From assembly GCA_905178155.1 (NCBI GenBank), contig CAJINV010000005.1, positions 1-40,822 of the forward strand: a DNA stretch of 40,822 bases, read 5' to 3'. This document shows, one piece after another, positions 13,523 through 36,800 of the stretch. The number at the start of each line of letters is the position of its first letter. The stretch's first letter is position 1. The notes under the pieces are model-generated. The model did not search any database and was not told the origin of the DNA. It worked only from the letters and a program-made list of their open reading frames with translations. A program made the position numbers and the translations under genes. This DNA is from Amoebophrya sp. A120 (Eukaryota; Protista; Dinoflagellata).

Positions 13523-16500
13523 CTATTTCTTGCACGTTCTAGTTCTGTCGAAAATGTCTTCCTGCAGCAGAAACCGCTTCTCTAAACTATTGCTCCACGC
13601 AGCTACACCTTCCGAGGCCGTTACAACCACCTTTCGGCGCTTCGCTGCGTCTCCTGTGTCTTCTGCGGTTTGATTTTCTGCTGCCCTCTCCTTGTCTGCG
13701 CCGCGAACGTTTTTCGCTGTGTCATCCTGTCCCCGCTGTGATGCAGATGTTGCCTTGTGGTCGCTGCCGCTTCTGGATTTCAACGTAGCCGGCCCCTTGC
13801 TTTCAGTCGTTTTGCTCGCGCCCAAGAGGCTGCCTAATGCTGTACCCCCGGTTGACGTCGGTTCCTTGCAGGCAGCTGCAGATGCAGAGGGCTTCCATCC
13901 GCCACATTCATGGAAGTCCAGGTGGATAGCGGCTCGCATCTGAAAAAATGCGAAGTAATCCCCATGCTGCTTGTACACGCGCCTGCCTCGGTCCGGCCGT
14001 TCTCCAAAAATGGCTCTGTGATAGCGGTTGTGGTTGTTCTTTTTACTGAAACTGAATGCAATCATCATCATCATCTGAATGCAATTCTGATACTTATGAA
14101 AACCAGATATAGAGATCGGAGGTCGTTGTAGCACACTCAGATACGCTTACTCTCTATGGATCCTATGCTGTTGCAGCTAGTGTGAGAAGTGCAGGAATAG
14201 CCAAGCATTAACATCAAGGACGAGCCAAAAACAAATAAACGCCTCCGCTATACTTGTAATCTGCACTGCCAAAGGTGTGGCCCTCAGAGCTTGTAGTCGG
14301 ATCCTGCTGCTTCCGCAGAAGAGTCTGACGACGTATGTCTTCCGCATCAGATTCGGAACTTTCTGTCCATTCTTCTTCCGACTGATAGCTGTCCTCCCTT
14401 TTGTTGTCGAAATTCTTCTGCTGCGCTTCGTCCGGATTTTCCGACCTGATCCGAAAAGCCAGCACCCCCTCGCCGTCGGCAGGCAGGTGCTTCGACCGCG
14501 GCGGCGGTGCTTCCAAGGGTGCGACCCAGATTTCGTTGTCCGGCGCAGCCGTGGGCTGGTACTGCACGCCCAGCGTTTCCAAGTACGCTCGCAAGGCCTG
14601 TCGTGAGGGCCACCGCTTCTTCGAGAGCAACGGCTCGTCGGGATTCCCGTAAGAGACGGGAGGCGGCTTGTGAAGCAGGATCGCGCGTCTCGGCCGGTAA
14701 GCTTCTTCGGCGCGCGCGTTCGCAACTCGCATCATGCGCTCTTTCGGCGACCGGCCAGGCTGGGCGGTAATTGGAGACAACGGCGCAAGGGGAAGCACAT
14801 ACTCCTCCACGGGTCTCAATCTCTCCCCCAGCGGGTCCCTTGTGCGGTTCTCCGTGACTGCTTTCTTATTGCGATACTCCAGCCCGGAAAACGCCGATTG
14901 CCAGTCCTCGGGCAGGCGGATCGAATCCCGTTCGGCGTTGTGTGTTGTACACAAATCCAGTTCCTGCAGATACCAGCGCACCGAAACACGCGCGCCTGCA
15001 AATATGCCCAGCGCAGCAACGAGCTTGTCACGGCTGCTCTGGTGTAAAAACTCCTTTACCTCGTCCTCCGTTGTGAGTGACAACGTCATCGGCGTGGGCG
15101 GAAGCCGCACGCTGTCGGTCTGAACGCACAGCCGGCTGAGGACGCGGACGCACGGCCCGCAAGGAAATTGGTTCACTATCTTGCAACGGAAGTCCCCGTC
15201 CAACAGCTCGGAATGCTGCAGCTGCCCCGGACTCGTCGGAAAGACGAGGGTCCATGCGAAATCAGTCGCGGCAAGGAAGTCGTCGTGCTTCAGCTCGGTC
15301 ATACGGGGATTTGCTTCCAGGTGGTGACTTTCGAAGAACCGGCACGAGAGCGGAAACAACAGCTCATCCGCAGTAAACGGAGACTCGTAAAAATCGGAGT
15401 CGCGTTCGTCTTCAACTTCACGGCTTCTGCGACCGCCTAAAATCAAGTGTCTCGCCGTGCAAACAAACGCGTTGTATTGTTCTTCTCCGGTCGTGAGGAA
15501 GTCAATCTCGGGCAACCTCTCCATCCCCGAGGAAAGCTCAGCATCGTCATTGCTTCCACCCACCGCCTGCAGCCGACCTTCGTTCTGTGCATCTTCTGGC
15601 GGGCCAGTTGCTGCGGGTCGTTGCCCAAACTCGTCCTCCACAAAGGCTGTCGCCATCGCGCGACTGTAAATTTGTTTTCTGCGCTGGCGCGTTTCTTCTT
15701 GCTGCGCTGCGATATGTTCTGGGACTAAGAAGTCACACAAGGACCGGGGGGCCCGAGAAGCGTGGACCACGGGCGGATATCGGTTTTCGGAGAAATAACA
15801 CCGTTTGCCGGTTTCGAAAAAGTTGTGCAGCATGCTCGTCGACCAAAAAAAGGTAAGCGCGTCCAGCAATTCTAGGCGCACCTGCAGCGGGCACCGGTGC
15901 CGTGGGTTCCGGCAGTTAACCTTCATACCCAAAGCCTTTTCCAACTGCTGTCGCTGCCCTTCCGGCTCGTCGTAGCGGCTGCTTTGGGACTTCGCCTTTC
16001 CACCATGGCCCACGTGCCACGGCGTCCGCGGCGCAAGGAAGTCCACGTATGCATATGCAAACATGTCTGGGCCGTGGACGGGTCCGAGTTTGTCACGCTA
16101 AGTCTGGTCGACCTCGACGCAGAGCTCTATCAGAAGTGGCCACCCTTGGGCGTCAGTCCTCGAAGACAACATTTCTCATGCAGGATACGCAGCGAGGAGC
16201 CCTCTCGCCAAAACTTGTGATGCTAGAGCCCGCAAGTCAGCCCGTCTATGTCATGCAGAACATAGAGCGCAAGTCTTGCAATCTTCCAACCAGGAGACCC
16301 ACACCCAGTCGCAGACATATTTGCAACGCATACCGCGTCCTCCTTCACTAATTCAAATTTTTCCGCTACGGTGTTGGTCGCACGATTCAGCTCACACTCC
16401 AGGGTCTGCTCCAAGTAATTTATGCGATTTGCCCGTCTGTGCTTAAATGCCAGCTGATCCACCGTCGGAGAAAGCCACGGAAGTCCTTTGCCCGGAGCGA

Positions 16501-19500
16501 ACGGATGTTCTTTTTCGTGAAAAGCGTGGTCGCCCAGCATCTGCTGCATTTCGTCGAAGTCAGGAATATTCACCCGTGACGCGAACGGCGGGACCTGCAG
16601 CTCCAACATACCTGCTAGCCCCATGTCAATTCTGTGACGCGTTGGGAAAGGGTCGTCTACGTTGCTGTCGGTTTCGGTCGTGTAACTCGTTTCATTCTCA
16701 GGGCCTAACTGCGAAGCCTTCTCATCCAGCGGTCTTCTCGCTTCCTCGCTTGTCCTGCTTTTTTTCAGTTTCTTCCTGCAGGCTTGTGCGGACGCGCTTA
16801 TCACAAAGGAGCTGCAGTTTTCGCCTTCAAGGCCGTACGCATGATCCTGCTTCGCATAAACAGGAAAGTTGCGAAACAAGAAGGACTGCATACCGCAACA
16901 CTTGTCATCGCCTTGCTCGACGTTTGGAAGATTAAAATCCCGCAAGTCGTAGCGAGCATTCTTTTCATTAGCCGCGTTGCGCACAAACTTATCACACAGA
17001 AAAAAGCTAGCACACACAACACAGTACTTCTGTGCGAATTGAAATAGACAAACACGATGAAAAATCAAAATCTGCTATGGGCCGCGGCAGCATAGGATTC
17101 TGCTTGGGCTATGCGACGCAGATACAGACTTTTGTGCACTTATTCTCTTTTGCGTCACAAATGTGAGATGCCAGCTTTTATCCCCAGGATAGACTTCGTA
17201 ATTTGCCCACTGCTCGTCGATGGTGTCTCGCTTGCTCGCATCAGCTCGATGAAGCGTCGACTCGCTCGCGCTTTCCCGAATCTGGTCACGTGACGAGTCC
17301 TTGCTGCGATTGACGTTTATTTTTTTGTCCGTATGACCTTCCTTCTGGAGCGCAGCAGCCCGAGACGAAGATCCGAGGGCGGATGTACCTATCGGCCGCT
17401 GATTGGCGACGCTGGCGCCCCGCCCGGTAGATGCACTGCATGCACCCTGCTCATTGTCCGACGCGACGGCACTACTTACCAGGAGATCCGCTGCACTGAC
17501 GCATCCGCTCGCGAAGTCTTCTAAGTCCGCCACGGTAGAACGGAAAACATCTTGACTCCTGCTGCTGCCGCAGGAAAATTTAGAATCGAAATCCTCGAGC
17601 GCCGTGGGACTCAAGTCATAGTGCAGCGGAACGGAGGCATCACAGGGAACGGTCTGCGCCCGCGAGCCCAGCACTGCTGCAAGCTCGCCGTGTTTTTTCC
17701 TGGATTTTGCAGTTTCCAACTGCTCCCCGCTGTGGGGAGCGCACAGCCGCCAACGCGTGGGCGGAAGACAGTCTAATGCACGCACATCTGCGCAACGCAT
17801 TCTCCAGGGGCCCTCCTCCACGTCGACGGTCGACACGAAGTGCGGATAGAGGCGGAGAGGAGCAGCAGCAAAAAGATTCATGGGGAAAAGCCGGTAGGAT
17901 TGCTTGGTCTTTGTCCCTTTGGCCCGGCCAGCAGCGCGCACAGATGAGAGCTGCTGCTGGCTTCCCAACCGTTGCGCTATGATATCCTACAGAAAAGCAC
18001 GCTTGTTCACCCATAGCGGAAACAAAAAGCCTATAGCTTTCGTGTGACAACTAAGACTAGCGAAGCGTCTTCGTGGCTGCTCGGCATGACAAACTTTTAC
18101 GCTAGTTCTCGGAGTCCGATCGCAATCCCAATCGCCTCACCGCATTAAATCTAAAAGCTGCACTCTGCATGAAAAAAGCCTACTTCTCTCGTGGTCTCCG
18201 CACTACGGGGCTCTCAACGATACCACCAACCTAAGAGCACACTTCGACCTTCGTGATGTGGGCGCTGTGCTTTTCTGCAAAATAGATGACGCACTTTGCT
18301 ATCAGCTTGTCGTCGCCGATCAGGTTTTCCACCTGGTGTCTTCTCAGCGGGTTCTCTGGTGCGTCACTGCGGAGCGGAAACAGCATCATGTTGGAATACT
18401 GTTCGTAGGACGGGAAGAGCAGCGCGCCGCCGTTTGGCAGGAAGGCGGGGGAGTCCCAGAGCCGCTGAAGGTCCTTGCGAAGCCGCGTGCCGAGCGCACT
18501 GTTGTGAGATCGGTCGGAGCCGCGCGCCTCGGTACTCAGGACCCACTCTGAACAGTCGAACTCAAAGGCCTGATCCGCTAAAACTGTAGGAGAGTCCGGG
18601 TCCAATCCGAGGATCTGCAGGCGCTGTTGCTCTACTGCGACGAGAAGCTGCTGCAAATCAAGTGTTTCCATATAAAAGGGATGGCGCGCTATCCCGGTTT
18701 CTGGCGTTCGGTCAAACTCCCTGGCCAATTCTTCTGTATTCACACCAGCCGGCGTCGAGATTTCAAGAACTTCCTTGCGCAGCAGGGAAAGTCTGTCGCA
18801 CAAGGGGGTGGCGCGCTTTCGCAAAATGCGAAACACCGCGACGAGGCAATGTCCCTCCAGGCCTTTCTTGCCTGGCCGTAACGCTGAGAGCGCGAACTCC
18901 GCACCGCGAACCACCGCAACGCAATGCAAACTCCGAGCGCCAACATCAGCGGGACAACATGACCGCGAGTCGGCTGCTGCACCTCCATCGATTTCCTTAG
19001 TGGTGCCCGGACCTCCTCCATCGACTTCTTCAGCAGCGTCGCCTCCGCGTTCTGCCGGACACTCCTCAAAACTGCTGCTATGACGCTCTGCCGATTTTTG
19101 CCTTGCTTGGTCCGGAGGAAACAATACGGGCCCAACCTCTCTCTCCGCTAAACCAATGGGAAGCCACCGATCAACCAACGCTGCTGCTTCCGGTTCCGTC
19201 TTTACCCCAGCAGGCGCGCACACCGTGTCACTCCACCCAACTTTCACTTTTTCGACGCAGCGCCCTGCGCTGATTTTTGCGGTTTGCTTTGTTTCGTCCA
19301 TGTGCAGCCCACGGCTCTTATACCAGGCTCCCGGCAAGAAAACGAGCAGAGTTCCGGCTGTGCGCTTCGTGACGTCTTCTACGGCCCGCAGTACATCATA
19401 GTCTGGCTCCATGGGTCGATCTTCGTGATCTAGAACTCGCGTGGACCGAAATTTCCCCAACTCAGTTCGCCCTGGGTTTTTTCGAAGATCCAGCGCCCTC

Positions 19501-20896
19501 CTGGGCCCCGCCGTGCTTCCATTTTCATTTTCGGTCGCCGAGCTATTCTCTATCACCTCCTCCGGAAGCGCGGCGTGGCGGCCGACGCGATTCGCATACC
19601 CGCTTCTTTGTGCTCGGTACTCTGCAACCTCGTCGTCCGATTTGGTGCCGTCCTCGTCCCGGTTGTGCAGGTACCTCTCGGCCCACCCCTGCGACTTCAC
19701 CAAACCAGAACCCCGAGGGCCAACTCCTTTCGCCGCAGCGCCGGCTTCCTTCTCTGGAATTGCGGTGCCCGACCTCAATGTCGAAGCGGGAGGCATCTCG
19801 TCCTGATGCGGCATCTCCTCCTCCCCCTGTTCCCCACCACCGTCCAGCCGTGCAAACTGCAACTCGACGGGAAAGGGAAGCTGCAGCTGCGTCTGCAGAT
19901 CCTCGCATACTTTCAGCTCAGTCAATAGTTGCGTCAGACTTTTGTCTGTGCCGTCACGGTCGCGGCAGCGGACATCGACGTCGTTCCTGCCGAGCGACCT
20001 CGTTAAGAGATGCTCTTCAACCGGCTCACTGTGCACCTGGGAACGAAGCTTGTAGTTACACGACACGTCGTCGTCCGACTCGTAGTCCTCGTCGTAGACT
20101 TCATGATAGGCTTTGAGAGAGAGGCCGGGCGGCAGAGTGGCAGGCAGAAAGGGCCGAGCACTGATGTTTTTAGAGCGTCGGGCGCGTGAGTAAAGGTTGT
20201 CGTCGATAGCGGTCAGCAGCCTGCGGTCAATCCTCTTCATTTGTCGAAAAAGTGGGCCCAGTCGCTGGACCTGGTCGCGACGGATCACGCCTTCGACGAA
20301 ATGGCGCACCTGCCGTTCCGGCGCACGGGCCTTGGCCCGTTCATCGACCCAGTAACCTGTCGCGTTTAGCACATAAACTGGATTCTTAACCCGCTCGCTC
20401 TCGGCCTCAGCTAGACGATCCGTCACGCGCTTGCGTCGCTGCTGTACTTCAGGGGCGGCCCCATGGAGAAGCTTTGCCAACGGTGGCCGCGCGATCTCGA
20501 ACTCCTCGCTGGTCTTGCTTACCTTCACGCGGGGCGGACTGGGCAACTCCACCCGGAAAGTCGCAAAGAACGTTTTTCCCGCCCCGCGAAGAGTGCGCTC
20601 CAACAAAGCAACGCCGGCGTCTGTCGTGAGCGGCGACTCCTTCCCATTCTCCGGCGTTGGCAGGAAGTCGCGCAGATCGCCTTTCTCGTAGGCGTATGCA
20701 GTGCAAATAATGCGTCTGGCTCTGGGGAGATGCAAAAAGCTAGCCCGCTAGCACAGCGCGACGCAAAGAACAGTCTTGCAGGAACGGAAAAATCTAACCG
20801 CTTTTCTTGGTCACACGGGAACAAGGGGCTTTTTGCTCATGCACGATAGCCCTCGGGCAGCTGCTGCAAGACCCGGCACGATTCTAGGGCATGCAT
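13523..20896 (-). CDS. Family A paralog A2 (~2,070 aa), multi-exon
   Basis: Five consecutive minus ORFs (18231..20735, 17075..17968, 16223..17068, 14214..16064, 13523..14134) carry the A1 motifs in order. Hand model: exons 20896-20891, 20729-18286, 17978-17146, 16959-16334, 16046-14254 and 14045-13523, total 6225 nt, divisible by 3. The start exon is tentative. Confidence 0.8.
14046..14253 (-). other. Canonical phase-2 GT-AG last intron of A2
   Basis: AA|GTATAG...TTTCAG|T AAA joins ORF 14214..16064 to the frame of 13523..14134. An alternative in-frame acceptor ends at 14052. Confidence 0.65.
16047..16333 (-). mobile_element. Introner-like GT...AC intron with 22-bp terminal stem (A2)
   Basis: Arms 16047-16069 gtatgcatatgcaaacatgtctg and 16312-16333 cagacatatttgcaacgcatac. 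In-frame junction LVKEDA|VDFLAPR. Confidence 0.78.
16960..17145 (-). other. Intron in A2, ends uncertain (AAAAGA direct repeat; internal 9-bp IR)
   Basis: An in-frame TAG at 17077-17075 must be removed. Direct repeat at 17146-17151 and 16960-16965; IR at 17131-17139 and 16979-16987. Confidence 0.5.
17979..18285 (-). mobile_element. Introner-like intron with 18-bp terminal stem and TCAT direct repeat (A2)
   Basis: Arms 17983-18000 and 18267-18284; sense TCAT at 18289-18286 and 17982-17979. Removal gives DKLIAKCVIAQRLG, gap-free against A1 DKLFARSLNAQRLG. Confidence 0.75.
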
Positions 20897-21938
20897 ATTA
20901 CCAGATCCTCTTGGTCAAGCGAAGCCCGAATGGATTGCTGCAAACATCGGCTCTCTTCCAGATCTAGACATATTAAGTTGCACTTGAAGTTGATAAGGCG
21001 AATTGAAAATGCTGACGCTCGTGCGGCGGTGGACCGTCCGGGTCGTGCGAGGCCTCCGAGTCGCTCATGATCTTGAAAAATAATCGCAAGCAAAGTGGAA
21101 TAAGAAACTGTCAATCAATGTGATCAACGCCAGGCACATTATCTGGCTCTCATCTAAGCGCCGCGCCCACGAAAGAACTTGAGCGCCCTCTTATCTTTAT
21201 GGAAATGCATTTGCGATTCATTGTGCTCACAACATCTGAACGAAGCAGCATCATGACGAGACAAAAACGCTAGCTATATTTCTGATAAAGTGCATAAGTA
21301 CAAAAAAGCTATCTCGAGACGCACAGGCACTTTTTTCTTGCTTCAAGATGAATTACGATGGTTCGAGCATCGGGATCGGAACCCTTTGAAAGTTACGCAG
21401 GTGCAAAATCGCAACGAATCGCGACAAGATCCATCAATGCCACCATGATCATCAACTTCAATCAATGGACAAATATCAGGATCCGTTGAAAATGTTGATC
21501 ATGGTCCAGCCACCTCGCCGCAAACAAAAGATCCAAGTGCTTATCTCGTTTTGGGACACCAGCACCTGAGGAATGATGGCTGTGGCATGGAAGATCGGTA
21601 TATGAAGGGTCATGAGCTGCTGGTGATTCGTCCCCGAGTACAGATCTGCGCTACATCTACAGCTGACTCGCTGATGCTGATCTCAAAGAGTAAGAGGCAC
21701 ACTTTCCAGATAGAATGAAAAGGAACAGAACAAATACAAACCAGAGCTCCTGCATAATGACAATGAGCTGTCATCTTTCTCCCGAAGGTAATATGGAAAC
21801 GCGTACTATGTCGCAACCGAAGCCCATCTCTACCACCAACCAGTGCGTATTCCAAAAATGATAGAAGCAAAGTCGTCCCTTTGAGTGAATACCAATACGT
21901 TTGACCAATTCGCAGCATTATCCTCCTCGCTAGTCAAT

Positions 21939-24318: not shown

Positions 24319-27300
24319 TTAGACAGAATCACGACCGCTGGTCTTCGCAACCTTTCTTCTCCCGTCTTTATTTGTAGCTTGATTCATTGGCGATCCACTG
24401 CCGCTACCCCGGCCGCTTGCAGGCCTCTTCTTCGACTCTGAGGGCCGCCGGTCATTTTTGCCGGCAAACGCTCCCTCGGCTCTTTCCTTCTTTTTCTCGC
24501 GCAGCCGCGATGCCCGGTCCTTCTCCCACTGCGGTCGCCATCCACTGAAACTGCTAAAGTCGAGGTGATATGCCGCACTGAGTCGGAAGACCGCGTACTT
24601 TTTCGCAATGTTGCAGTCGTCAGTAGTTACGTCTGGATCAGTAGTTACGGCTGGGGTTGCAAGGGACTGCTTTCCGTCTGTATCACCAATGACGCCATCA
24701 TCTTCAAACGTCTCTCCTTCTTCGCACGATGACCTGTTGAAAAATGAGAAGAAGATAAACACACAGGATCGAGAAAAAGTTGACTTTATGAACCAGGGCG
24801 CACGCGCAGTGCAAGAGCAAAAGTAGACATTGGGAGAGTACCAAAACGAAACGAGCACAGAAAATCGATACGTGCTATCAACTGCTTTGCCGCTTTTCCT
24901 CGCGATCGTCGCATCTGGTGTGGTTTCGCCAATCGGGAAGTACAGCAAATCTTTGGCGAAAGTCCCGTCCGCCGCCTTCATTTCGCCCGACAGCGGAAGC
25001 GGCGCTACCCAGACGTGGTCCCCCTCCTCCGCCGGAAGGTATTGGTCCCCCATTTCGGACAGTAACCACTTCCCCAGCGCGTCGCGCGACGCAAAGCTTG
25101 GCAACTTCTCCGGCAGAGGTTTCCGCAGGACGATGGCACGCCGGGGCTTAAACGCTTCCACGGCATACTGACTGGACGCCTCCATCAAGAGCTGCTTGTT
25201 CCTTCGTTGCTTCTGGCTCGAAGTTGGGTCCACAACCGAATCGTCTGGTGTGGAATGATTATTGGCGAAACTACCCACCTGAAGATGGCCCTCCTCGACG
25301 CCAGTGAAGCTATCTGGTGGCAACGTGATCGGCGCAATCGGGGCCAACGGCAATGCAAACTGCTTCACGCGGTAGAACTTGTTCGCTCTGAAGGACAACT
25401 GCTGGCACCGCTCATAACTCTTCGGGTGCTCGTTTACCTCTTCCAGATACCAACGCAGCACAACTCGCATCTTCGCACCCCGCAGAGTGATCGCCGCGAG
25501 CATTCGATCGGGCAATGGGCAACCGGACAAAATTTGCGTGATATTGTCACGTGTCAACACCAACTCCAACGGGCCGCTCGAATGACTGGTAGCGGAAGTT
25601 CCCGTGACCGCAGCATGTCGAAGCGTGTCGGCCAGTGACGGCTCCCTTTTCTCCACTGGATGAATTTCCGCTGGGCCGCCTTTCCCGTTGATCGCGTCGT
25701 GAGTGGATGAGAGTAGATCAGCATAAAACTTTGACAGCTGCTCAAAGTATTCTGGCCCGTGCACAGGCCGGCTCGGATCTTCTTGTGCCAATGCCAGGTA
25801 CGGGTCGTGCTCTGTCATGAAGGCGTTTGCCGGAAAGACCAACTCCCAGTCGAAACGGATGGCTGCGAGGAGGTCACTTTTGCGCAGGTGGCTTTCCCAG
25901 GCGTCGCTGCTGCAAAAAGAGTAAATGCCGTCAACCTTCACGGGTGGAAAATGGGCGCCCGGCCCCAGTGGAACCTCGTCGCTTTGACTAGGAAAATAGA
26001 CTTGACCTAGCGAATCTCTACCGTCGACGTGTCCGTCCTCGCGTAGCGGGCCACTACCAAACAACAGCAGGCGGAGGCCACGCAGCATGGCATTAAATTG
26101 GCGTTGTTCATACGTGAGAGCCTTCAGGCCTCTTGTTTTCCGCAGTCCTACCTGCTCCGAGGCGGATGCAGGGGGGATAAAAGTGCAAGCAATTTGGTCG
26201 CTTCCGATGGGCTCCCAGATCTGGATGATGCGATGCCAGTCATCGAAGTGCCTCCAGAGTCGTGTCATCGTGTCCAATAGCTCAAGGCGAACTTGGTAAG
26301 GACAACGGTGCCGAATCCTCCGCGGATCGCTGTTGATTGAATGCACCCTCTTGCTGTTCTTGAGGCAGCTCTCAACCATTAGGGATGCGCTATGCTCTTT
26401 CTCTGGAGTCAGCTCCTCTATGTTCGGCACGAGAAACGGACCTCCTTGACCCGCTGCGGCCGTGTCGGCATGGTTCACTTCATCCCCCAAGATACTCGAA
26501 TTCTGCTCATCAACATGAACGAGGATAGCGCCTCGGTTGCCGATAGAGATATGGATATTGTCTAAAAACCGTGCGTGATCATGCAGCTGCGAGGGACAAA
26601 TGCCTGCTTCCAGAAGGTAACGGGCAACTGTTTGTGTCTCTTCATTTCCAACATCCTGCTGACCTCGTTCCCCTCCATCTTGGAGCTGGTTCATGTTCTC
26701 CGGAATCAGAACACGTTCCGCGGCTGGCGGAACCCGGACTTTGAACATTCCGCAATGCCCGAGGTCCAGCGAGTGTGCGTCGTGGTAGCCTGTGTTCGGA
26801 CCCCCCTTGTGCAGCAGAGCTTGCCTTGCGATCGGGCTCAACCCCGCACGGCGACCAACCTGGTTTCTCACATCCTGCACCGCCAGGCGGAAGCGACACT
26901 GCTGGTCGCGGACCGGGGGACCATGGCAAATGAACTCGCAATCGATTCCCGCCAGCGGCGCGCGGTTGTGGGAATCGTCGAAATCCTCGGGGTCCTGGAC
27001 CGAAATCAAGTGCGTCACGTGGTAGAGAGAGGAGTCTTCTTGCCCCACCTTCCTCGTCGAATCTTCTCTACTGGTCTTCTCGCGCTGGTGCCTCGACTCC
27101 TCCACATGCGAAATCGCACCCAGATCCAGAAGATGAGGAGCACAAGAACTCCACGGGGATTTATTCAACACCCCTGCTGCACACTCGAGGATTCGGTCCG
27201 GTTCGGCAATAATGTGTTCCGCAGCGACTTGGAGTTTCTTCCTCAAAGAATTGTGCGCTTCCAAACGAAATACATGGCTGCTGCTATCACTGTCCGTCAC

Positions 27301-30300
27301 CGTTGCGTCATCATGAACCTGACCCTGCTCCTGCTGAGAAGCAACTTTCATATTAACGTCGCCATCTGGACTCGCAGTGCTGCCGTCCTGGTTGCGACCA
27401 CCAGTGGAGATGACCTGCTCCACTAGCCCGTGTCCGCGATCATTGGCTTCGTCTACCTCAGGAACCACGGCTCCCTTGCGTTCGGCGTTTTCGTCCGCAG
27501 GCGGCATTCCGGAACAATTTGAGTTTTCCCCCGCGGCGTCGTCCGAGCACTCCGACTCCACGAGCTCCAAATCAGGGTACTTGCAGAAGATATCCGGAAC
27601 GTTTTGTCCCCTAGTCTGCACCATTGTGCTTGCGGTGAGCAGAGCGATGGCTACGGAATCCGCCACGTCCACGTCCACATCGGACTATCAACAAGCAAAA
27701 TTGAACCGTGATGTAGGTGCGTCCTCCAAAGATAGGTAGTTGTCGTGCACCCAGCGCAAGACAAAGACTTCCCGTCTAACATTAAAGTTGTCACGACCAC
27801 CTTTCGATTGATTCAAAGGCAACAAAACCTTGGTGAGTGTGATATTTTTTTTTCATCTTCGCGCACTTTTAGAAGCCCACTGCTTTGGATTGAATTTCTA
27901 CTTACGTCTACCTGCTTATTTGTGGCGTTAGTGATAGACAGGTAGTACAGCGAAATCTACATCAAGGGGCAGGCGGGAGTGCGACATTCATGAATAAGAT
28001 TGAGATATCTGATTGGGTAGTCCTCATAGTCTCGCCTTGCCTTGCGGCTATTGCCAAAAGTCATCAACGTGACCTACTGCGGTTCTCTACTACTTCGATA
28101 GCTGACGAGTTCGGAACCGGCAGGGAGGAAGTCGGTCCAGCGAGATTATCTCGTGCGTGCGCGCACGGGGGATATTCCCGAAACCTTGGCATGCCGTTGG
28201 TGCGGTGTGAATGTGGTAGTAGATGTCCAGCTTCTTGAAGGTTTCAGCCCAGGCAGAAAGAAGTGGCTTGCTGGCATCACCCAACTGGCAGTTACTCCCT
28301 TCGGCCGACTGTGGGCAGGCCGGTTGCGTGAGGCGCTGCCCGATACCGGACTGGCGCAAAGCGCGCACGAACACTTTATCCCTGCCCAATGTTCTCGCAT
28401 GAACGGGCAGCGGGGAGGATGGAGAATCCGTGCGCAGGGGAAACAGCTCTCGATTGCTGTAAATGCGATACGAAGGTAACCCAAGCACGCCACCGTCAGG
28501 CAGAAACGTAGGAGAGGACCAGAGCTGGCGCAGAACGACCTCCAGCCGCTGCTGCTGCAGCGACTTCTTGTTCCTCCGAAACCCCCGCTGATACGAATTA
28601 ACGTCGCTGAAGAAGTCCCACGGCTGTATGTCAAACTCGAAGGTCTCGTCGATCAAGATCTGCTTCCTTGAGAAACCGGCTTTCCGGAGCTTCTTCCGCG
28701 TCACAGAATTTAGGTGGGCACCGAGTTCCACTGAACCGTTGTGCACAGCCCTCTGCAGAAACAGATTAGCTTGATACTCCAAGATCGTGTCTAGTTCGAG
28801 ATCGTTTACGTCTTTGCCCTCGACCAGGTACCGCCTCTCCTTTTCGTCGTACAAGAAGTCTACCAGCATGGCGGGGCCTTTTTCACGTGTTTCCTCCAGA
28901 AGTTTCTCCGCCATCGGGAGTTGCCGCAGCAGCGGCGTTGTTCGCACACGGAGAATCCGAAAGACGGCCACGATTGCGTGGCCTTGAGTCGGGACAGTGC
29001 TCAGGTCGACCGACGTACCACGGACGACTGCAATGCAATGAAGCTGCGATCCACGGCTTTTTTGGCTTTCGGTCTCCGGTGACACGACAGAACCCGGGGT
29101 GCGGAGCGGTTCTGCCCCCTGCGATAAAGACGCACAGGAAGAAGTCTCGTCGTCAATGACAGCGGCGTGGCGCAGATCCTCGGACAACTCATCAAGTCGA
29201 ATCGCTGGTGGCAGCGCAGTGCCCGCACGGGCGCTGTCCGCGAAGGGAACCTGTTGGAGCTCGTAGCGTTCGCGCAGTCCGTCTTTCAAGTTCAGCTTCA
29301 TTGGCCGGGGACGACACCACGCACCGGGGAGGCAAACCAGCAATGTTCCGACGGTCCGTCGTCGAATGTCGTCGCGGTGCCGTAGAATGTCGTGGTCGGC
29401 TCTGCCGTCGCTTCGCCGCAGATCATGAGTAAGGATGTTTACAACACGCTCTTCCTTCGAATTATCCATCGTGGTAATTTTTTCCTCTTTCCATTTGCGA
29501 CCGCGGCCGCCGTCTGCGTCATTGTATAATGCCAGCCGACTACTAGATGCACCACGACCCGGCGCGTGGTGTCCACCAACATTTCTCGCTACTCCGGGAT
29601 TTTTCTGTTCGGCGTGCAAAGCTGTCACCGCCCTGTAAAGAGATCCCTCGTCATCAGACTTCACTTTCGTCGCGGGGCGCCTGGCAATCCTGCGGTCCCT
29701 TTCTTCCGCTTTCTCGCGGCCGTAGTGATAGTCCGGCGAGTATTTCTTTCTAAAGCGCGGGCGCGGGGACCCGTTCTTTGTGAACTTCCGGCAGCGGCGT
29801 CGGTCTTGCAGCGACTCGGCCGAGGATGAAAAACTGGAGTGGTCGCTCTCGCTAAGCTTTTCGTCTTCCTTCGTGTATTTCCAGGGCGACCTGTTGTTTT
29901 TCCGTTTCTCGGCCGAAATTGCATCGCGCAGCTTGCGGCGGCGTTTGATGCGCTTCGCGATCGCCTCGGATTTTCCGGGAGCGTCATGTCGCGCCTTCGT
30001 CTTGCGGGTCTTGCCGGCGGCGTCAAGCCGCACGAAATCCAATTCCACCGCATAGGGGTACTCCAGCTGATCACGAATGTGGTCCGGCACACCCGCCGCG
30101 ATGAGCTCGTCTGTTAACGACCGCTCCTCCAGAACTTGCCGTCCTGCACCAGATTCGTCCTCGCCGTCTTCACGATCTAACACCCCAACTTTCACCGCCA
30201 CGTCCCCAGCTCCCAGCGAGCGCGTGAAGAAGCAGTCGTTTCGGTTCTTCCGGACGTAGAAACGAGGCATGCCCTTCATTTCCTCGCGCCCCCGGTAATT

Positions 30301-31260
30301 GCAGAAGTCCGCGCAGTTGCTTCCTGTCAGCGGCACGCACAAGGACGGTGGCAGCACTGCTGGTGTGAGCTTCGGGTGCACCAGACCAGGACTGGCCGAT
30401 GCAAACGGCCGGCTAATATTCTTATCGCATTCGGCCAGGGAGCGCAGCAGCTCGTTGTCGACGCGCTTCATCTCCCCGAGAAGGGGATCGAGCCGCGCGT
30501 GCTGGTCAGCGATCAGGGCGTCCTCGAACAGATTCTGCGCGTGCTTCTCGGCGTCGCTTGTCGGCGACGAAAATTTTGGGCGCGGCATGGGGCGTCTGCT
30601 TTCGTAAAAGCGGTAGTCGTTTAAAGGGTCCCAACGTTTTGTTATTGGAGAAGAGGCAGTACTGCCTTCCCCGTCCTCATTTTTTCCAGAGTTGGTATGC
30701 CCCGCACCACCCATGTCCTCGGGTGGCTTTGCGTCTCTCTCTTTCTCGCCGCCCTGTTGACGTGCACCTCCTGAGCCTGGACTCTTGCTTGCCACTGCAG
30801 CGGACGTTGCTTTTTCCTCACACGACGAAGAGATGGCGACCGGATCCTCTCTTTCCTTGGTCTGTGTCTGCTCTGCGCCACACACATCAGAAGCCTCCGC
30901 CTCCTGCTCCTCCTCGGCTGTCAGAAGTTCAACAACTTTTTCCTGCGTTGCGGCGTTCAGAATCGAACCCAGGCTGGGGCGCTGTACCTGGTAGACGTTT
31001 CCGGAGCGAAGCACGTGGACACGGGGGGGGCCCGATACATTGACCTGGAAGGACGTTTGGAACTCGGGACCCACTCCGCGCAGGGTCCGCGCGATTTTTT
31101 CAAGGCCTTCCTCCGTGGAAACGCGCATCTTGCGCCAGGACCCATCTGCCGTCAGCACTTCACCGGCATAGGGTTCGCGGCTTTTGTCATCGTCCCCCGC
31201 GCCTCCCCACCGAGTGCCATCTGACCGACCACCATCAGATGAAGATGAAGAGGCGCTCAT
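24319..31260 (-). CDS. Family A paralog A3 (~2,130 aa), three exons
   Basis: ORFs 28090..31266 (first ATG 31260) and 24319..27678 are in the same frame and carry the A motifs in order. Model exons: 31260-28102, 27684-24872 and 24733-24319. Confidence 0.83.
24734..24871 (-). other. Canonical phase-2 GT-AG last intron of A3 (138 nt, stop-free, hidden inside the ORF call)
   Basis: AC|GTATCG...TTTTTCAACAG|G with a pyrimidine tract. It translates to an F/S-rich stretch absent from the paralogs. Confidence 0.75.
27685..28101 (-). mobile_element. Introner-like non-canonical (CT...AG) intron with interrupted terminal IR (A3)
   Basis: The sense-strand 5' end CTATCGAAGTAGTAGAGAACCGCAGTAGGT pairs in nested blocks with the 3' end ACCTACATCACGGTTCAATTTTGCTTGTTGATAG. 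It is 417 nt, and removal is in frame and eliminates the stops. Confidence 0.6.
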
Positions 31261-31785
31261 TTCCAATCAGATGTCGTCGTGGCTCGAGATTTATTTGTTT
31301 TTGTTTGCCTATGCCTTCTCTATCTCTTTTATTCATTCTACAACATCCAACAAGAAGTCTCTGAGCAGGGGAGAACAGGAGGAAACGCACCCACAAAAGC
31401 ACGGTAGTAAAGTTTTGAGCTTTGTTTTGGTCTCCTCGTCATGCTCTTGTCGGCACTAGTCGAGTGCAGAATCATCTTGGAGCACTTTTTGTCCAGCCTG
31501 CCACTTCCGTGACCAACGATGTACATCTATCATCTTACCACGCGGCTCTATCTGGTGTTGAAGCTGTTGAAGACACGTACCATGCGCAGATTTCGCAGTT
31601 GCCTCTATGTCTTCATCAAAACTCGCCAAAACATGCAACATGATCTGAATCTTTTGAGTTTGATCTGTCAAGAACCGGGATCTTGCTTTCTATCTAGAGG
31701 TCTTGACTTGTCCCTCGCTACAAAGAAAAAACTCATGGAAAGAAACCTCCTGCAACTTGAACTGTAAGCCAGTGTCAGAACTTGC

Positions 31786-31824
31786 GTAACTTTTCATCCG
31801 GCCGGCGGCCGGCAGAAAAGTTAC
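31786..31824. other. Strong hairpin ~75 nt downstream of the B3 stop
   Basis: gtaacttttc (31786-31795) / gaaaagttac (31815-31824) form perfect 10-bp arms around an inner ccggcc/ggccgg stem. Confidence 0.6.
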
Positions 31825-31899
31825 CCGGTTCCAGAATGTGCTTGATTTTTGAAGGCGATCTGGAGGTCAAGAGGGAAGTTCGGATTATCATGATCATCA

Positions 31900-33159
31900 T
31901 CATCTTGCTGGAAAATCCTCTTCATCGGAGAACGGAAACCCTACGTTGTCACTAGAGTCATCTGCATCTTCGGTTTCCGCCTCCTCTTCCTCATCCTTTT
32001 GGGCCGGAAACCACAGTAAAACCAGTTCATCGCCACTTTTGTGCACCAACTCGTCCACCAGGCGGTCGTCTGGGTCCTTTTCTCCAGCGGGTTTCTGCTC
32101 TTCCTCAGGCTGCTTGCTACCGTCATCTTCACTGCCGGCTTTTATGTCCGGTTCCTGCTTACCGGTGCTCTTCTCCCTCTTGTTCCGGACTGGAGACAGG
32201 CCCCCGTCGTCGATGTCCATGTCGTCTGCAAGCGGAGAAAAGTCGTCGCTGTTCATCTCCACGTCGCTCAGAACCGCATCGCTCTTCCCCTCGTTATCCG
32301 ATACCGCGTCCTCCGTGAGCTGCGGCACGAACTGCAACGTGCGGTCGGGAAAGCAGCGTTGGATCTGCTCCCTCGCCTCCCGCAGCGTCCAGGAGCGGTT
32401 GATCTTCAGCGTCGGCTGATCTTTAGCATCCAAACCCTGGATGGTCACACCGTACTCGTTACCGGAGATGTCGACGAGCCGAACGTACCGGATTGGAGCT
32501 TCCTCCTCGTCGCTCGCCTCTGGTGCATTTTTGTTTTCTCCACCTGCACCGGAGCTTTTCTTGTCTACTTCCTTCTTTTCCCCGACTGCATTCTTGCTTG
32601 CTGCGGCGCCCGTGCCGCAGTCGGCTTTGGCCTTTGCGTCGACCACTAGACCACAAGACGCATTTTCACCACTTTCTCCGGCGGAGGTCTGTGCTACATC
32701 AACCGGCTTCTCGTCGCCCAGCTTCCGTTCGCCGCTCCCATTATCTACTACTGCGGGCGCGCCGGCTGCTTTGGCCGATTGGTTGGCCTGGTCCTTGATG
32801 TCCTGCTTCTGCACGTTTGAGCTTTTGCCTTTCGTCACTTCTTTAATTTCCTCTTCGGTGGCGGAGCTGGTCCCGCCTACCTCTCGTGAAACCGTCGCGA
32901 GCACTGTCGGGGAGTAGCCGAAGGTGCTCACGTCCACGGAGTCGATCCGCCACCCGTCCTCAGCTGGCAGAAGCACGTTGGAGAGCCACGTCCGCACATG
33001 CGTCAAGCTTGACAGCTTCGGGGAAAACATGATGCCCCGACTTCGCGACTGCTCCCCGGTGCCAACCGTCGCAAGCGGCACGCGGGCCATTTCGAAGGCG
33101 GTGGCGACATGGCTGGTTGTCGCCACCAACTGAAGAGGCATATCATCATCCATGGACAT
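31900..33159 (-). CDS. Family B paralog B3 (419 aa)
   Basis: Single ATG ORF with PLQLVAT, HVRTWLSNVLLPAEDGW, IRYVRLVDISG, TLREAREQIQRCF and DPDDRLVDELVHKSGDELVLLWFP. Confidence 0.88.
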   Translation of the reverse strand: MSMDDDMPLQLVATTSHVATAFEMARVPLATVGTGEQSRSRGIMFSPKLSSLTHVRTWLSNVLLPAEDGWRIDSVDVSTFGYSPTVLATVSREVGGTSSATEEEIKEVTKGKSSNVQKQDIKDQANQSAKAAGAPAVVDNGSGERKLGDEKPVDVAQTSAGESGENASCGLVVDAKAKADCGTGAAASKNAVGEKKEVDKKSSGAGGENKNAPEASDEEEAPIRYVRLVDISGNEYGVTIQGLDAKDQPTLKINRSWTLREAREQIQRCFPDRTLQFVPQLTEDAVSDNEGKSDAVLSDVEMNSDDFSPLADDMDIDDGGLSPVRNKREKSTGKQEPDIKAGSEDDGSKQPEEEQKPAGEKDPDDRLVDELVHKSGDELVLLWFPAQKDEEEEAETEDADDSSDNVGFPFSDEEDFPAR

Positions 33160-33847
33160 GTTCGAGCGCTTGAGTATCTTGTTGCGACGACATACGATCC
33201 TCAGTGGTACAACTGTACGAGAATTTCAAGAGGGTACACTGAAGAAAAAAAAAAAACTCTCATGACGACAAGCGCAACCTCGCTGATGTGCTCTACAGAT
33301 CAGAGAACTGAACGAAGAATTTTTTGGGCAACTTGCTCCGAAGCAGAGTTTTGGTTTTCCGAGATGCCACTTTCGCAAAAAATAAAACGTCAGCGTGTTG
33401 CGCAAATTACTCCTTTGCATCGTCGATTGGCGTAGTTTTACTTCTGGTTTAACTGTACATACATAGTCATAGATTCTTGTTTGTGAAAAGTAACAAAGCG
33501 AACAACTGGAGGCGAGTCTTCCATTTGAAAGTAGTCTTGCGAGGGGGTCTGGTTCTCAATGCCACAGCCAGACAGGCCGTAAGTAGATACAAAAACAGTT
33601 GTTGCTCATCAACTTCTTTTTGGCAGCGTGGTGCAGAAGAACGCCGGGTGTACCCATGATATAAATAGAATTTAGCCATATCCGTGGTAGATACTTGTGC
33701 CTAGAATCTCATATACAGAACATCTTCCTCCAGCAAACGTCATCATAGTGAGTTTGTTTTCGGATTCTCGCGAACAGAGATGCATTTACATCCTCAAACA
33801 CATATTTGAACGCGTTAACCAAGTCAGTAGCTGTCCCGCGATCCTCG

Positions 33848-36800
33848 TTACTCCGGCGCAGCAGCATGTTGTCCGCCTACGTTTTCATCCCGCACTTGGG
33901 CTTCTGGTGTCCCCTCACGTCTTCTCTTGGCCTCCGTGCCGACAACATTACCTCCATCCGAACCTGGACTTTCTGCACCTCCCGCAGTTTGAAGATTTGC
34001 AGCAGCGGCCTTCGTTTGTATCTTGTCAAGTTTCTGCGCATTTTTCCCTATTCCTGCATATTCAGACGCGGCGACATCATCCCGGCCCGGCGGTTTCCAG
34101 CCGCCCGTGTGTCGCAAATCCAGGTGGATAGCCGCGCAGAGACGGAACAACGCGACGCACTCTTCCCTGCGCTCTTCGGTCTTCGCGTCGGAAATTTCGA
34201 AAATGGCACTGTGTTGTGTGTTTGGCATGAATATGTAAATGGCAAAAAATACGAGCAAAAAGTAAAGAGGAATTCTCATTGAAGCATTTTTTTCAATACT
34301 CAAAGTTCTCCTTTTCGCAGACGTGGTTTCGCGTCGACTCTCCCTTGTCAATAGTGACCGCTTCTTGCTCGCCGGGTTCGCGTTCAGCCGCGTCGCCCTC
34401 GGTGGCGGATGACGATTTCGACTGCTGCTGCGTGCCACTTGATGGGTCCGATGAACCTGCAGCGATAGGAAACCAGTACAGATCATCAGCGGTCTCTCGT
34501 CCAGTCAGCATGCGTAGCAGGCCAAAGCTATCCGGATGCGGCAGAAGTGGCGTTACCCAGACATCGTCTTCCGCCGCCTCGTACTGTGAACCAAACTCCG
34601 CTGCCAAGTGTGCCTTTAGCGCTGCCCGGTCGGAGAATATTTGCCCAGGGGGGCAGACGTGATCCTGTCTTGGCGGAAGTCGGTTCAGATGAATCGTCCG
34701 GCGCGGGCGAAACGCACGCTCTGCATGCAAGCTTGCAGCTTTGATTAGCCGATCCTTTGGTGTTCGACCACGTTGTGGCAGGACCAGCGCGGGATCAACG
34801 GGCGACAGAATGTACTCGCTGACGTCCTTGAAAAATTCCTTGGCGAGACTTGGATCTGCGGCCGCGTCTTGCAGCGGCGGGGCGTACGCTGGATCAAATA
34901 TTGATGACGTGGTTGCGACTAAATCGAGCTCCTCGAGATACCAGTGCACCGAAACCCGAGGCGCTCCACAGCGAATCGCAATCGCACAAAGCCATTGGGC
35001 AAGAAAAGCAGTATGAAGCTCCTCGTCGCGACTGGCTCCGACCGAAATTCCGCTTCCACTCGGCCGCGAAGTGCCCGCAGCAAAAAGGCTTGCTGCTGAC
35101 GCCGCAGACAAGACCGGAATGGAGAACGGAGGCTCTGGGCGTGGTGTGCCCGATCGGGATGCTACGCTTGTGGCGAGAAGTTCCGCTTGCTCGGCGTGTC
35201 CTAGGAGCTGCAGATCTGCAAACCGGTAGCCGTGCCGCAGTGGAAATACCAGCTGCCAGTGAAAATCAACAGCGGACAGCACCTCGTCCCTCTTCCACTG
35301 CGCCACCCAGAATGTCTCCTCACAGCGCCAGGGATTCATTCCGGAAGCCCCAGCAGGACAAAAAAGCGGATTCCCCTTTTCGACATCGACGCGTTCACGT
35401 GGTTCGTCGCTGAATAGGCTCGCAGCCCTTTCTCGTCCGACGATTAAATACCTCAACGTTTGAAGGAGGGCGTTGTACATCTTTCGCCGATTTTCACTTT
35501 GCCAGCTTGAAACTTTGTTGCTGGTGCTCGAGCTGATGCTGATCTCGTTCATTTCGTAATATGCACGTCCGAAAAATGCCTCGCACAACAACCTCGTCGG
35601 TCGTTGAGCTTACAGGAAGGAAAAACAAGACTGCCTGGTTTACTATACTTACAATTTAGATGTTGTGGCATCGCCTGAACTGACTGTAGCTGCTTCAGCT
35701 ACTGCATGCAATTCCAAGTCGATGCACTATGCACATAGGGCAAATTTCAAATGCGGTTTTCGTGGCGAGTTGTCGTGGCGTTTCTTCTTGTTTGTGATTG
35801 CGAGATCTTCCTTGCATTTTCAAAGGCACCTTGTAAGCACGATAAGTACGAAGTAACAGAGTTGAATCAAGATTCCATAAGGGTGGAGCAAGGTAGCAGA
35901 GCGGGCACGGCGAGGCTTTGTTGTGCTCTGCGTTTTTCACTTCGCCTGCCGCGTCGAGCTTGTGATACCGCTCAAAGTCAGACACTGTAGCGGCCAACGG
36001 AAAAGGAAACAGGTGCTGCATTTTCCTCACAATCTTCCCCATCTCTTTGAACTCGTAACCGTAGCGGATGCTCTCACCAGAACAGTTTACCCAATAGACT
36101 GTAAGGGCATCCAGAATCTCCAAACGGCACTGCAGCGGACAGCGGTGTCTGGGATTTCGTGGCTCGAGTTTGCCGCGTAGGACGGTCTTGAGCATCTCTC
36201 CGCGTGTGGCCGTCCAGTCACGCGCATTTCTGTCCTCCAGCCACCGGCGCTTCTGTACACGCAACGCGCCGTCCCAACTTCGAGGAAGAAGAAAATCCAC
36301 ACTCTCTGTATAACAAGCTCAGAAATTAAATTTGAAAAAAAGTTTTAGCTCACCTTCTTAGCTAAAATTCATTGTAATTTAGGTTGATGTTTAAACTGGA
36401 TAGCTCAGCAGGCTTCTGGCGCATTGCGGATGCGTGCATCCGCAAGACGCCAGGAGCCTGCTGGCTAAAACACATTTTGAAAATTTAATTTCTGAGCTTT
36501 TTATACTCCGCTATCAGTTGCTGCTTGTCAGCAACGGTGGTCGACATCGCATTGAACTCATCCTCAAGACACCCGTCAGTCTGCGACCGCTTCGTATCTC
36601 TTTCCTGTTTAATATCTCTGAGCCGTTGATCACGTTGTCGCCCGTCCTCGAATCGATCGGCATTCGGATGCTTCATTCTCGCTTTATGAACTTTCTCCGC
36701 TTCTTCGGCCTGCTGCCACGCTTCCGCGTTCCAAACTGCCTCGTCGATCTGGCGAAAGTCCGGTATGTTCACCCGCTGGCAGGCAGGCGGCACAATCAAC

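Follow-up and report, generated by a model that had tools for sequence, protein, structure and literature searches.

Non-GT-AG introns from small transposon-like insertions in a tandem gene family of Amoebophrya sp. A120

The window (40,822 nucleotides) opens scaffold 5 of Amoebophrya sp. A120. It carries tandem, highly divergent paralogs that encode an orphan protein some 2,000 aa long, and the segments which interrupt three of them, A2, A3 and A4, are real non-GT-AG introns that stem from small transposon-like insertions. The six introns (i1 to i6) are very probably introner elements (IEs) of A120, TAT...ATA insertions with a 5-bp duplication which are removed together with one duplication length. 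The phenomenon is real but already known, since it matches the introner elements with TAT-initiated inverted repeats published for A120 in 2021, and the six introns are already contained in public gene models. An initial annotation of the window had named Amoebophrya as a lineage with described introner elements, and the host indeed proved to be A120, in whose genome they were reported (Farhat et al. 2021, BMC Biol 19:1, PMC7789003).

The host paralogs share just 27-35% protein identity, divergence between their proteins exceeds one substitution per site, and the seven paralogs compared sit on long branches of a tree in which A1, A2 and A4 form one clade with unresolved branching. A Pfam search with family A and family B gave no match, and a search for homologous proteins in a word-indexed library, with A1 and the middle exon of A4 as queries, found none. 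Searches were run with single-exon references, joined models serving only to check frames, to align and to build the tree. The N-terminal ORF of A2 is partly covered by a separate public fragment model of 138 aa, and the C-terminal exon of A1 is recognised by homology (E 4e-13). Canonical GT-AG introns occur near the 3' end of every paralog examined, that of A1 being predicted; those of A2 and A4 lie at the same place, just before the AIF motif, in phase 2. The A3 intron is invisible to ORF reading because it is divisible by three in length and falls within a continuous ORF (24319-27678). None of the canonical introns of A2, A3 and A4 had been listed in the initial annotation. The GC content of the non-canonical introns is 38-54%, that of the exons 57%.

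Table 1. Genes and introns of the four paralogs in the window.
Feature	Position	Strand	Length, ends or extent	Basis
A1 gene	3538..10515	-	2162-aa ORF 4027-10515 plus homologous C-terminal exon ~3538-3784	
A1 predicted GT..AG intron	3785-4045	-		in-frame GT-AG candidates
A2 gene	13526..20735	-	CAD7948894.1 spans 13526-18671	
A2 3' intron	14016..14253	-	238 nt, GT..AG	CAD7948894.1 mapping and sequence
A2 i1	16044..16333	-	290 nt, G|TAT...ATA|CGTG	CAD7948894.1 mapping
A2 i2	16986..17192	-	207 nt, CT..TT or TC..GT	RNA contig joint 16985|17193 and protein mapping
A2 i3	17979..18285	-	307 nt, C|TAT...ATA|TCAT	RNA contig joint 17978|18286 and CAD7948894.1 mapping
A3 gene	24322..31260	-	2127 aa	CAD7948904.1
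A3 intron	24734..24871	-	138 nt, GT..AG	CAD7948904.1 mapping
A3 i4	27682..28101	-	420 nt, C|TAT...ATA|GTCC, ends CT..CC	CAD7948904.1 mapping
A4 gene	33851..40090	-	1874 aa	CAD7948908.1
A4 3' intron	34209..34299	-	91 nt, GT..AG	CAD7948908.1 mapping and sequence
A4 i5, annotated	35556..35880	-	325 nt, T|TAT...ATA|TTAC	CAD7948908.1 mapping
A4 i6	36305..36506	-	202 nt, G|TAT...ATA|CAGA	CAD7948908.1 mapping

The bounds of i2 and i3 were taken from RNA contigs together with proteins and those of i1, i4, i5 and i6 from the mapping of public proteins only (Table 1). Public A120 proteins map exactly only when all six non-canonical segments are cut out, and the frames of A2, A3 and A4 are open once the interruptions are removed, as had been claimed. 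Reading ORFs alone had misplaced five of the six junctions: i3 was exact, i1, i4 and i6 came out 3 nt short (starts at 16047, 27685 and 36308), i2 was put at 16960-17145, bounds which have no stem, and i5 at 35580-35925. The latter candidate, with its CACAACAA/TTGTTGTG stem, disagrees with the public model, and the annotated protein CAD7948908.1 excludes i6 both as a segment of 199 nt, as first proposed, and as a 205-nt GT-AG intron (36302-36506).

At these bounds a single register, N|TAT...ATA|NNNN, fits all six introns (chance about 6e-5 for each); it is the sole register common to all of them and corresponds to the element together with a single 5-nt target duplication (TSD). In i3 a 4-nt repeat, TCAT, allows five registers, none of which is GT-AG, and for i4 a single register is compatible with the exactly mapped protein CAD7948904.1. 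i1 and i3 match the motif TAT-N7-AAA exactly and i2 does so approximately; i4, i5 and i6 lack the A run. The two 5-nt copies beside TAT...ATA match at four of five positions in i1 (CGCGG/CGTGG), i3 and i6 (CGGAG/CAGAG), at two of five in i2 (three of four with a 1-nt slip) and at none or one in i4 and i5, and no recognisable TSD is present at annotated i4 and i5. Direct repeats of 2-6 nt had been noted earlier beside most of the segments; exact direct repeats at the bounds first given or at the RNA bounds are 0-4 nt long. A scan of the window for strict TAT...ATA ends, a 12-of-16 inverted repeat and a 4-of-5 duplication recovered only i3 and i6; it was too strict for elements that have indels in the inverted repeat.

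Three or four of the six introns are members of dispersed families with terminal inverted repeats (TIRs) and 5-bp TSDs. Of the copies elsewhere that the initial annotation had proposed to look for, relatives were found for i1, i2, i3 and i6 and none for i4 and i5 in the genome search. The i1 family consists of elements of about 260-285 nt with TIRs and TSDs, has at least 40 genomic matches and is represented by dispersed copies that are 67-89% identical to i1. Seven inspected copies have TAT..ATA/TTA ends, TIRs of about 30 nt and 5-bp TSDs, four of them perfect and three matching at 4/5; ORF restoration around other copies of this family was uninformative, the adjacent exons being short. Three relatives of i2 have TIRs, with a perfect TSD in two and a 3/5 match in one, i3 has an 18-nt TIR in common with dispersed elements (matched 37 times in the genome and 10 times in the control), and i6 has one degenerate relative, on C23. 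The TIRs, fixed TSD and dispersed copies of MITE-like elements are thus found in the i1 and i2 families and the TIR of i3 is enriched, whereas a transposon origin of i4 and i5 is suggested by analogy only, because they have neither relatives nor a recognisable TSD. The earlier statement that the elements have no internal sequence in common holds for i1 and i6, the sole pair compared directly; it is to be read beside the genomic relatives of four of the introns.

Each of the six positions is occupied in one of the seven paralogs, and repeated independent gain, as first proposed, is supported by this comparison of sequences. Gain of this kind would account for single-paralog occupancy, for the 4/5 target duplications which i1, i3 and i6 keep, for the membership of i1 and i2 in dispersed families with TIRs and 5-bp duplications and for the 67-89% identity of i1 to dispersed copies when the hosts have only 27-35% in protein. 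That the introns were ancestral to the family and then differentially lost is very unlikely. The introns i1 of A2 and i6 of A4 are separated by 7 nt within a homologous site, and with the A1/A2/A4 clade unresolved a single old intron at this site is formally conceivable; yet i1 and i6 have no common sequence and a separate 4/5 target duplication is preserved at each of them. Loss could explain six positions, each filled in a single one of the seven paralogs, only if it had occurred precisely dozens of times, and i1 is still 67-89% identical to dispersed copies although the host proteins are more than one substitution per site apart. Non-canonical introns are also strain-specific in position (Farhat et al. 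2021, PMC7789003). A1 does supply empty sites, as had been suggested, alignments showing it to be empty at all six; however, an intron-free A1 is doubtful, as it probably carries the predicted GT-AG intron at 3785-4045.

Evidence that the elements leave the RNA comes from the contigs of X1 and X2, which were taken as RNA by guess. Their exons are 100% identical to the reference and their depth is zero over the bodies of the three A2 introns. Contigs of A2 lack i2 and i3 at non-GT-AG joints, a check of the kind that the initial annotation had asked for; the i2 joint is found in X1, and X2 shows a loose end there. No contig of X1 or X2 bridges i1, the nearest ending 40 and 73 nt outside, and the i1 junction is therefore that of the public protein. 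In one X2 contig a single nucleotide is inserted behind 15844. The raw RNA runs X7 and X8 (2026, same species label) gave no aligned reads and so do not bear on removal.

It is highly improbable that splicing uses only nearby GT-AG or GC-AG sites and that the inverted and direct repeats are incidental. True GT-AG introns do occur in the same genes and in-frame, ORF-preserving GT/GC..AG pairs lie near every element, for example 16988-17194 and 36302-36506 (205 nt). However, the former, only 2 nt off i2, is left unused and would alter one base of the mRNA, and the joints of both i2 and i3 are non-canonical in the RNA contigs, which refutes the GT-AG reading for these two. For i1, i4, i5 and i6 the annotated proteins fit only non-canonical lengths with no GT-AG register, so that sequence and protein mapping together leave GT-AG ends in none of the six and the claim of non-GT-AG introns stands. 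There is as little probability that A2, A3 and A4 are transposon-disrupted pseudogenes in which the segments are retained or which are untranscribed. The segments contain stops or frameshifts and the public model of A2 is fragmented and coverage is low, but the segments are missing from A2 transcripts, all three genes have public CDS models, and TAT...ATA elements are the sole disruptions of frames of about 2,000 aa which open fully upon their removal. That the spliced contigs are instead DNA from which the elements are absent, owing to excision in somatic cells or to polymorphism between strains, is extremely improbable despite the guessed RNA nature of X1 and X2, given that the contigs have no base substitution relative to the reference in the exons they cover (which indicates the same strain), that 100% of the sampled words occur in X5 and X6 from the same organism and fractions of 0.38-0.77 in X1-X4, that intron makes up 17% of the queried stretch and explains most of the words X1 lacks, and that transcriptome-based CDS models have matching joints.

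Complementary sequence at the ends, first described for all of the segments, is a property of most of them. Ungapped stems anchored at the ends were compared with 20,000 random segments of the same length, giving p-values of 3e-4 for i1, 9e-4 for i2 at its RNA bounds, below 5e-5 for i3 and for i6 and about 0.06-0.08 for i4. These anchored tests replaced duplex energies of free 46-nt ends, which discriminated weakly because the GC-rich background itself gives -20 kcal/mol. By MFE folding, another of the checks first suggested, five of the six introns have a closing terminal stem in which 15-20 of the first 20 nt pair with the last 25 nt (17/20 in i4), a value of 15 being reached by 1 in 400 random segments; i6 has 32-nt TIR arms that are 91% complementary and a fold z of -12. 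The exception is annotated i5, in which the fold shows no closing stem. It follows that the stem seen in 35580-35925 lies off the annotated i5 junction and that a hairpin cannot be strictly required. An inverted repeat of 8-20 nt between the ends is likewise strong in i1, i2, i3 and i6, weaker in i4 and absent from annotated i5, which for this reason is regarded as a non-canonical intron and not as a strict IE. At the bounds first given for i1, i4, i5 and i6, transition mismatches in the stems are biased on the sense strand towards G.U (18 versus 5 A.C, p = 0.005), which hints at selection on the fold of the pre-mRNA. Ten further family copies gave 12:12, a result which neither confirms nor refutes the excess because their coding strand was guessed from ORF sums and is unreliable.

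It is proposed that short, non-autonomous TAT...ATA elements, most of them bearing terminal inverted repeats, entered coding exons of single paralogs after the family had diverged, every insertion creating a 5-bp target duplication. The element would be transcribed as part of the pre-mRNA, where in most cases its inverted ends may close into a long hairpin and so place both copies of the duplication side by side. Splicing would then excise the element and exactly one duplication length, beginning 1 nt ahead of TAT and ending 4 nt past ATA, and so restore the reading frame as it was before insertion without a need for GT-AG ends. What the hairpin does, that the register is fixed and which machinery cuts, be it the spliceosome or another, are inferences. 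That splice sites at these elements are set by such a register, with one cut 1 nt ahead of the 5' TAT and the other 4 nt past the 3' ATA, and neither by GT-AG nor by the extended hairpin alone, is a tentative and rather doubtful proposition. It would be in keeping with i4 admitting no other register and this one alone suiting all six, with the in-frame GT-AG pair ignored beside i2, with annotated i5 retaining the register in spite of its missing stem and with the sense-strand G.U excess. The register may fail genome-wide, since splicing in A120 is reported to occur at variable positions with respect to the hairpin, and the border position was left 'unknown/variable' (Farhat et al. 2021, PMC7789003). 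If it held, imperfect duplications could resolve the border position across the genome. Within the window, imperfect duplications and the adjacent unused GT-AG pair pin down exact cut positions that the original paper did not fix.

The array adds no new kind of element; it illustrates a published phenomenon, with canonical 3' introns beside young, copy-specific, transposon-derived non-GT-AG introns, and its practical value is that of a small test bed. Euglenid nonconventional introns also lack GT-AG ends, and complementary sequence near their ends is considered to bring the splice sites together. To our knowledge no families that combine inverted repeats, target duplications and TAT...ATA termini have been described among them, and with a syndinian dinoflagellate of another lineage as host the resemblance here is functional only. 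In introner lineages with GT-AG splicing, the splice sites are supplied by the element or by its duplication.

A closer likeness is to the TIR-transposon introners of Micromonas, Aureococcus, dinoflagellates and others, which are short, non-autonomous, multi-copy elements with TIRs and TSDs whose insertions in exons are removed as introns, the loss of the element and one duplication restoring the frame (Huff 2016; Gozashti 2022, PMC9860276; Gozashti 2025, PMC12130899). A120 families are listed among them (Gozashti 2025, PMC12130899). Unlike the introners of Aureococcus, which are spliced at canonical motifs (Farhat et al. 2021, PMC7789003), the elements described here do not have GT-AG ends. 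The closest match is found in the IEs of A120 itself, described with inverted repeats of 8-20 nt, direct repeats of 3-5 nt and a TAT-N7-AAA motif in a genome where 66.6% of introns are non-GT-AG and GC is about 46% in introns versus 56% in exons (Farhat et al. 2021, PMC7789003). The introns of the window come from the same genome and resemble these IEs in their non-GT-AG ends, terminal inverted repeats starting with TAT, direct repeats over the junctions in the case of i1, i3 and i6 (4/5 matches), low GC, occurrence both as family members and as singletons, strain- or copy-specific positions and fast-evolving, unannotated host genes. There is no difference in kind between the two, and the local detail that goes beyond the published description consists of the one register for six introns, the ignored GT-AG pair by i2 and the TAT...ATA ends of i5 without a hairpin.

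The six non-canonical introns of family A, i1 to i3 in A2, i4 in A3, and i5 and i6 in A4, are delimited here by mapping public gene models. Family A queries drew a blank in two word-indexed protein searches, and nine proteins were recovered by an exhaustive HMMER search that used a segment of an A1 exon, including CAD7948894.1 (A2), CAD7948904.1 (A3) and CAD7948908.1 (A4). Each protein was mapped onto the window residue by residue and all junctions that reproduce it were enumerated. Together with contig joints, the mapping shows that the bounds in the initial annotation were exact for i3, 3 nt short for i1, i4 and i6, and wrong for i5 and i2, which had been placed at 35580-35925 and 16960-17145, respectively. 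Three canonical introns, one each in A2, A3 and A4, had been overlooked. The annotated A4 protein rules out i6 as a 205-nt GT-AG intron.

Family A genes and introns in and near the window
Feature	Position	Strand	Description
A1	4027-10515	-	single ORF, 2162 aa
A2	~13526-20735	-	gene extent
A2 canonical GT..AG intron	14016-14253	-	CAD7948894.1 mapping
i1	16044-16333 register, 290 nt	-	A2, CAD7948894.1 mapping
i2	16986-17192, 207 nt	-	A2, CAD7948894.1 mapping and contig joint
i3	17979-18285, 307 nt	-	A2, CAD7948894.1 mapping and contig joint
A3	24322-31260	-	gene extent
A3 canonical GT..AG intron, in-frame	24734-24871	-	CAD7948904.1 mapping
i4	27682-28101, 420 nt	-	A3, CAD7948904.1 mapping; single solution, CT..CC
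A4	33851-40090	-	gene extent
A4 canonical GT..AG intron	34209-34299	-	CAD7948908.1 mapping
i5	35556/7-35880/1, 325 nt	-	A4, CAD7948908.1 mapping
i6	36305-36506 register, 202 nt	-	A4, CAD7948908.1 mapping
A5	C5:45468-51761		one 2098-aa ORF, just beyond window
C9 paralog	contig C9		1759-aa ORF
C4 paralog	contig C4		1495-aa ORF

The four large family A paralogs on the minus strand are highly diverged (27-35% protein identity) and interleaved with family B, and a Pfam search found no domain match in either family. A maximum-likelihood tree of seven paralogs has the form ((C9,C4),((A3,A5),(A1,A2,A4))), and its terminal branches are 1-1.8 changes per site long. A run of N directly abuts the window end (L018:1-1430 = C5:40823-42250), past which the A-B tandem array resumes with a B-like ORF (C5:43018-44436) followed by A5. 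A family A homologue is also present in Amoebophrya sp. AT5.2 (P0005, 1738 aa), a strain whose annotated introns are nearly all GT-AG, and P0005 would be useful as an outgroup for dating insertions. The intact A1 ORF has no self-hit from either protein library, although proteins of A2, A3 and A4 are present; A1 may lack annotation in the public gene set or may not be expressed. The public A2 model begins at 18671 and a separate 138-aa model (P0008) spans 19827-20240 of the same ORF; contig coverage is patchy in the N-terminal half of A2 (18671-20735), so that what looks fragmented is the annotation rather than the gene.

Removal from transcripts is seen in two contig sets, X1 and X2, aligned over the 5,991 letters of A2 between 14750 and 20740, a region in which no reads were placed from the raw RNA runs X7 and X8. 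The RNA label of X1 and X2 is a guess, and they are taken to be cDNA because their exon sequence exactly matches the strain (0 base substitutions across covered exons), because sampled words occur at 0.38-0.77 vs 100% in DNA-like runs of the same organism, and because their joints match transcriptome-based gene models. An X2 contig has an additional A behind 15844, present at full depth and missing from X1; it shifts the frame within an A2 exon and probably results from misassembly. Contig depth is zero over the bodies of i1, i2 and i3. One joint, 17978/18286, skips the 307 nt of i3 with 4 ambiguous letters, and another, 16985/17193, skips the 207 nt of i2 with 1 ambiguous letter and is repeated by a loose end in X2; in none of the possible registers, five for the former and two for the latter, are the ends GT-AG. 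An in-frame GT..AG pair at 16988-17194 sits 2 nt off the i2 joint and is not the site used, as the resulting mRNA would differ by a base. No X1 or X2 contig bridges i1, where 15974-16373 is without any contig cover.

On their RNA or annotated bounds all six introns can be written as N-TAT...ATA-NNNN, and the spliced length always equals the TAT...ATA core plus 5, the excision of which restores the frame; a random segment would have both triplets in this register with a probability of ~6e-5. Comparison of the 5 nt preceding TAT with the 5 nt following ATA shows a match at 4/5 positions in i1 (CGCGG/CGTGG), i3 (TCATC/TCATA) and i6 (CGGAG/CAGAG), at 2/5 in i2 and at 0-1/5 in i4 and i5. The imperfection of some duplications constrains the register: i4 permits only a cut 1 nt before TAT and 4 nt after ATA, and i2 and i5 permit either this or 2 before and 3 after, which leaves 1/4 as the one register common to all six. 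Under this register one complete target site remains in the mRNA, made up of four bases from the upstream copy and the last one from the downstream copy.

Evidence of a transposon origin comes from relatives elsewhere in the genome. For i1 there are at least 40 partial matches (67-89% identity), and the seven copies inspected are elements of 261-281 nt with inverted ends of ~30 nt and TAT...ATA termini (once TTA), flanked by 5-bp target duplications that are perfect in four and match at 4/5 positions in three. The ends of i2 recur in three elements of 174-180 nt, with a perfect 5-bp duplication in two and a 3/5 match in one, and the 18-nt i3 end occurs 37 times with at most 2 mismatches vs 10 times for a reversed control. 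i6 has one degenerate relative. A genome search found no relatives of i4 and i5, which in this respect match the 'singleton' class (Farhat 2021).

It had been proposed that all of these interruptions are complementary at or near their ends. In an anchored, ungapped test against 20,000 random segments of the same length, the end complementarity of i1 was matched or beaten by 6, that of i2 on its RNA bounds by 18, and those of i3 and i6 by none; it is weaker in i4 and absent from i2 as initially bounded. In minimum free energy folds of the six introns as first delimited, 15-20 of the first 20 nt pair with the last 25 nt, and only 1/400 random segments reaches 15. On annotated bounds i1, i4 and i6 are still closed (17-20/20), but i5 has no closing stem (0/20). 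The CACAACAA/TTGTTGTG stem once suggested for i5 lies 24-45 nt from the annotated junction and is rejected as junction-defining. A 21-nt inverted repeat (35571-35591 / 35918-35938, 81% complementary) straddles the annotated 5' junction of i5 without defining it, and could reflect an alternative isoform or chance. The entire i6 folds as a single long hairpin (z = -12), the centre of which (36406-36463) is a near-perfect palindrome with 28-nt arms, 89% matched and 2 nt apart. Transition mismatches in the stems, read on the sense strand, comprise 18 G.U vs 5 A.C (binomial p = 0.005), and a crude count in ten other copies, with the coding strand guessed, gives 12:12; a sense-strand excess of G.U is taken only as a hint. 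It is proposed that the hairpin would bring the two duplication copies side by side and that the machinery would cut in the fixed 1/4 register. Judging by the annotated i5, a single gene model, the TAT/ATA ends may count for more than a long stem.

Each of the six positions is occupied in one paralog and open in all others that align there, and i3 and i4 lie in well-conserved blocks where the alignment is gap-free across the junction. i1 resembles its dispersed copies far more than the host genes resemble one another, and i1, i3 and i6 retain target duplications. Taken together, single-paralog occupancy, the similarity of i1 to its copies and the retained duplications make independent insertion after duplication much the better reading, which bears out the earlier proposal of repeated gain with A1 empty at six sites. 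i1 and i6 are separated by 7 nt at a site homologous between A2 and A4, a proximity expected in ~4% of such arrays by chance (a rough estimate of our own). Direct comparison finds no sequence shared between them, and they are read as separate hits because each carries its own duplication; their closeness may reflect a local target preference.

A1 supplies the empty site in all six cases but is probably not intron-free, since a homologous C-terminal exon (~3538-3784) lies past its stop codon and in-frame GT..AG candidates exist, for instance a predicted 3785-4045. With the A1 intron as predicted, the 3' region of every family A paralog examined contains a canonical GT-AG intron, with identical position and phase in A2 and A4; the single one of the C4 paralog, near its 3' end, starts with GTAC. 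The canonical introns of A2, A3 and A4 and the predicted 3785-4045 all begin with GTAT, the same N-TAT start as the non-canonical elements.

The finding is real and its initial interpretation correct in outline, and the phenomenon is already known, down to individual gene models. Introner elements have been described in the syndinian parasite to which the window belongs, Amoebophrya sp. A120, in which 66.6% of introns are non-GT-AG and U1 snRNA was not detected. Junctions carry direct repeats of 3-5 nt together with inverted repeats of 8-20 nt, the latter starting with TAT and continuing with roughly seven bases and then a run of A; the elements form 1,954 families plus many singletons and are enriched in poorly conserved genes, and introns are canonical at conserved positions and mostly non-canonical at strain-specific positions (Farhat et al. 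2021, PMC7789003). The introner families of A120 span several transposon classes (Gozashti 2025, PMC12130899). The array reproduces all of this, combining canonical 3' introns with copy-specific, non-canonical TAT...ATA introns.
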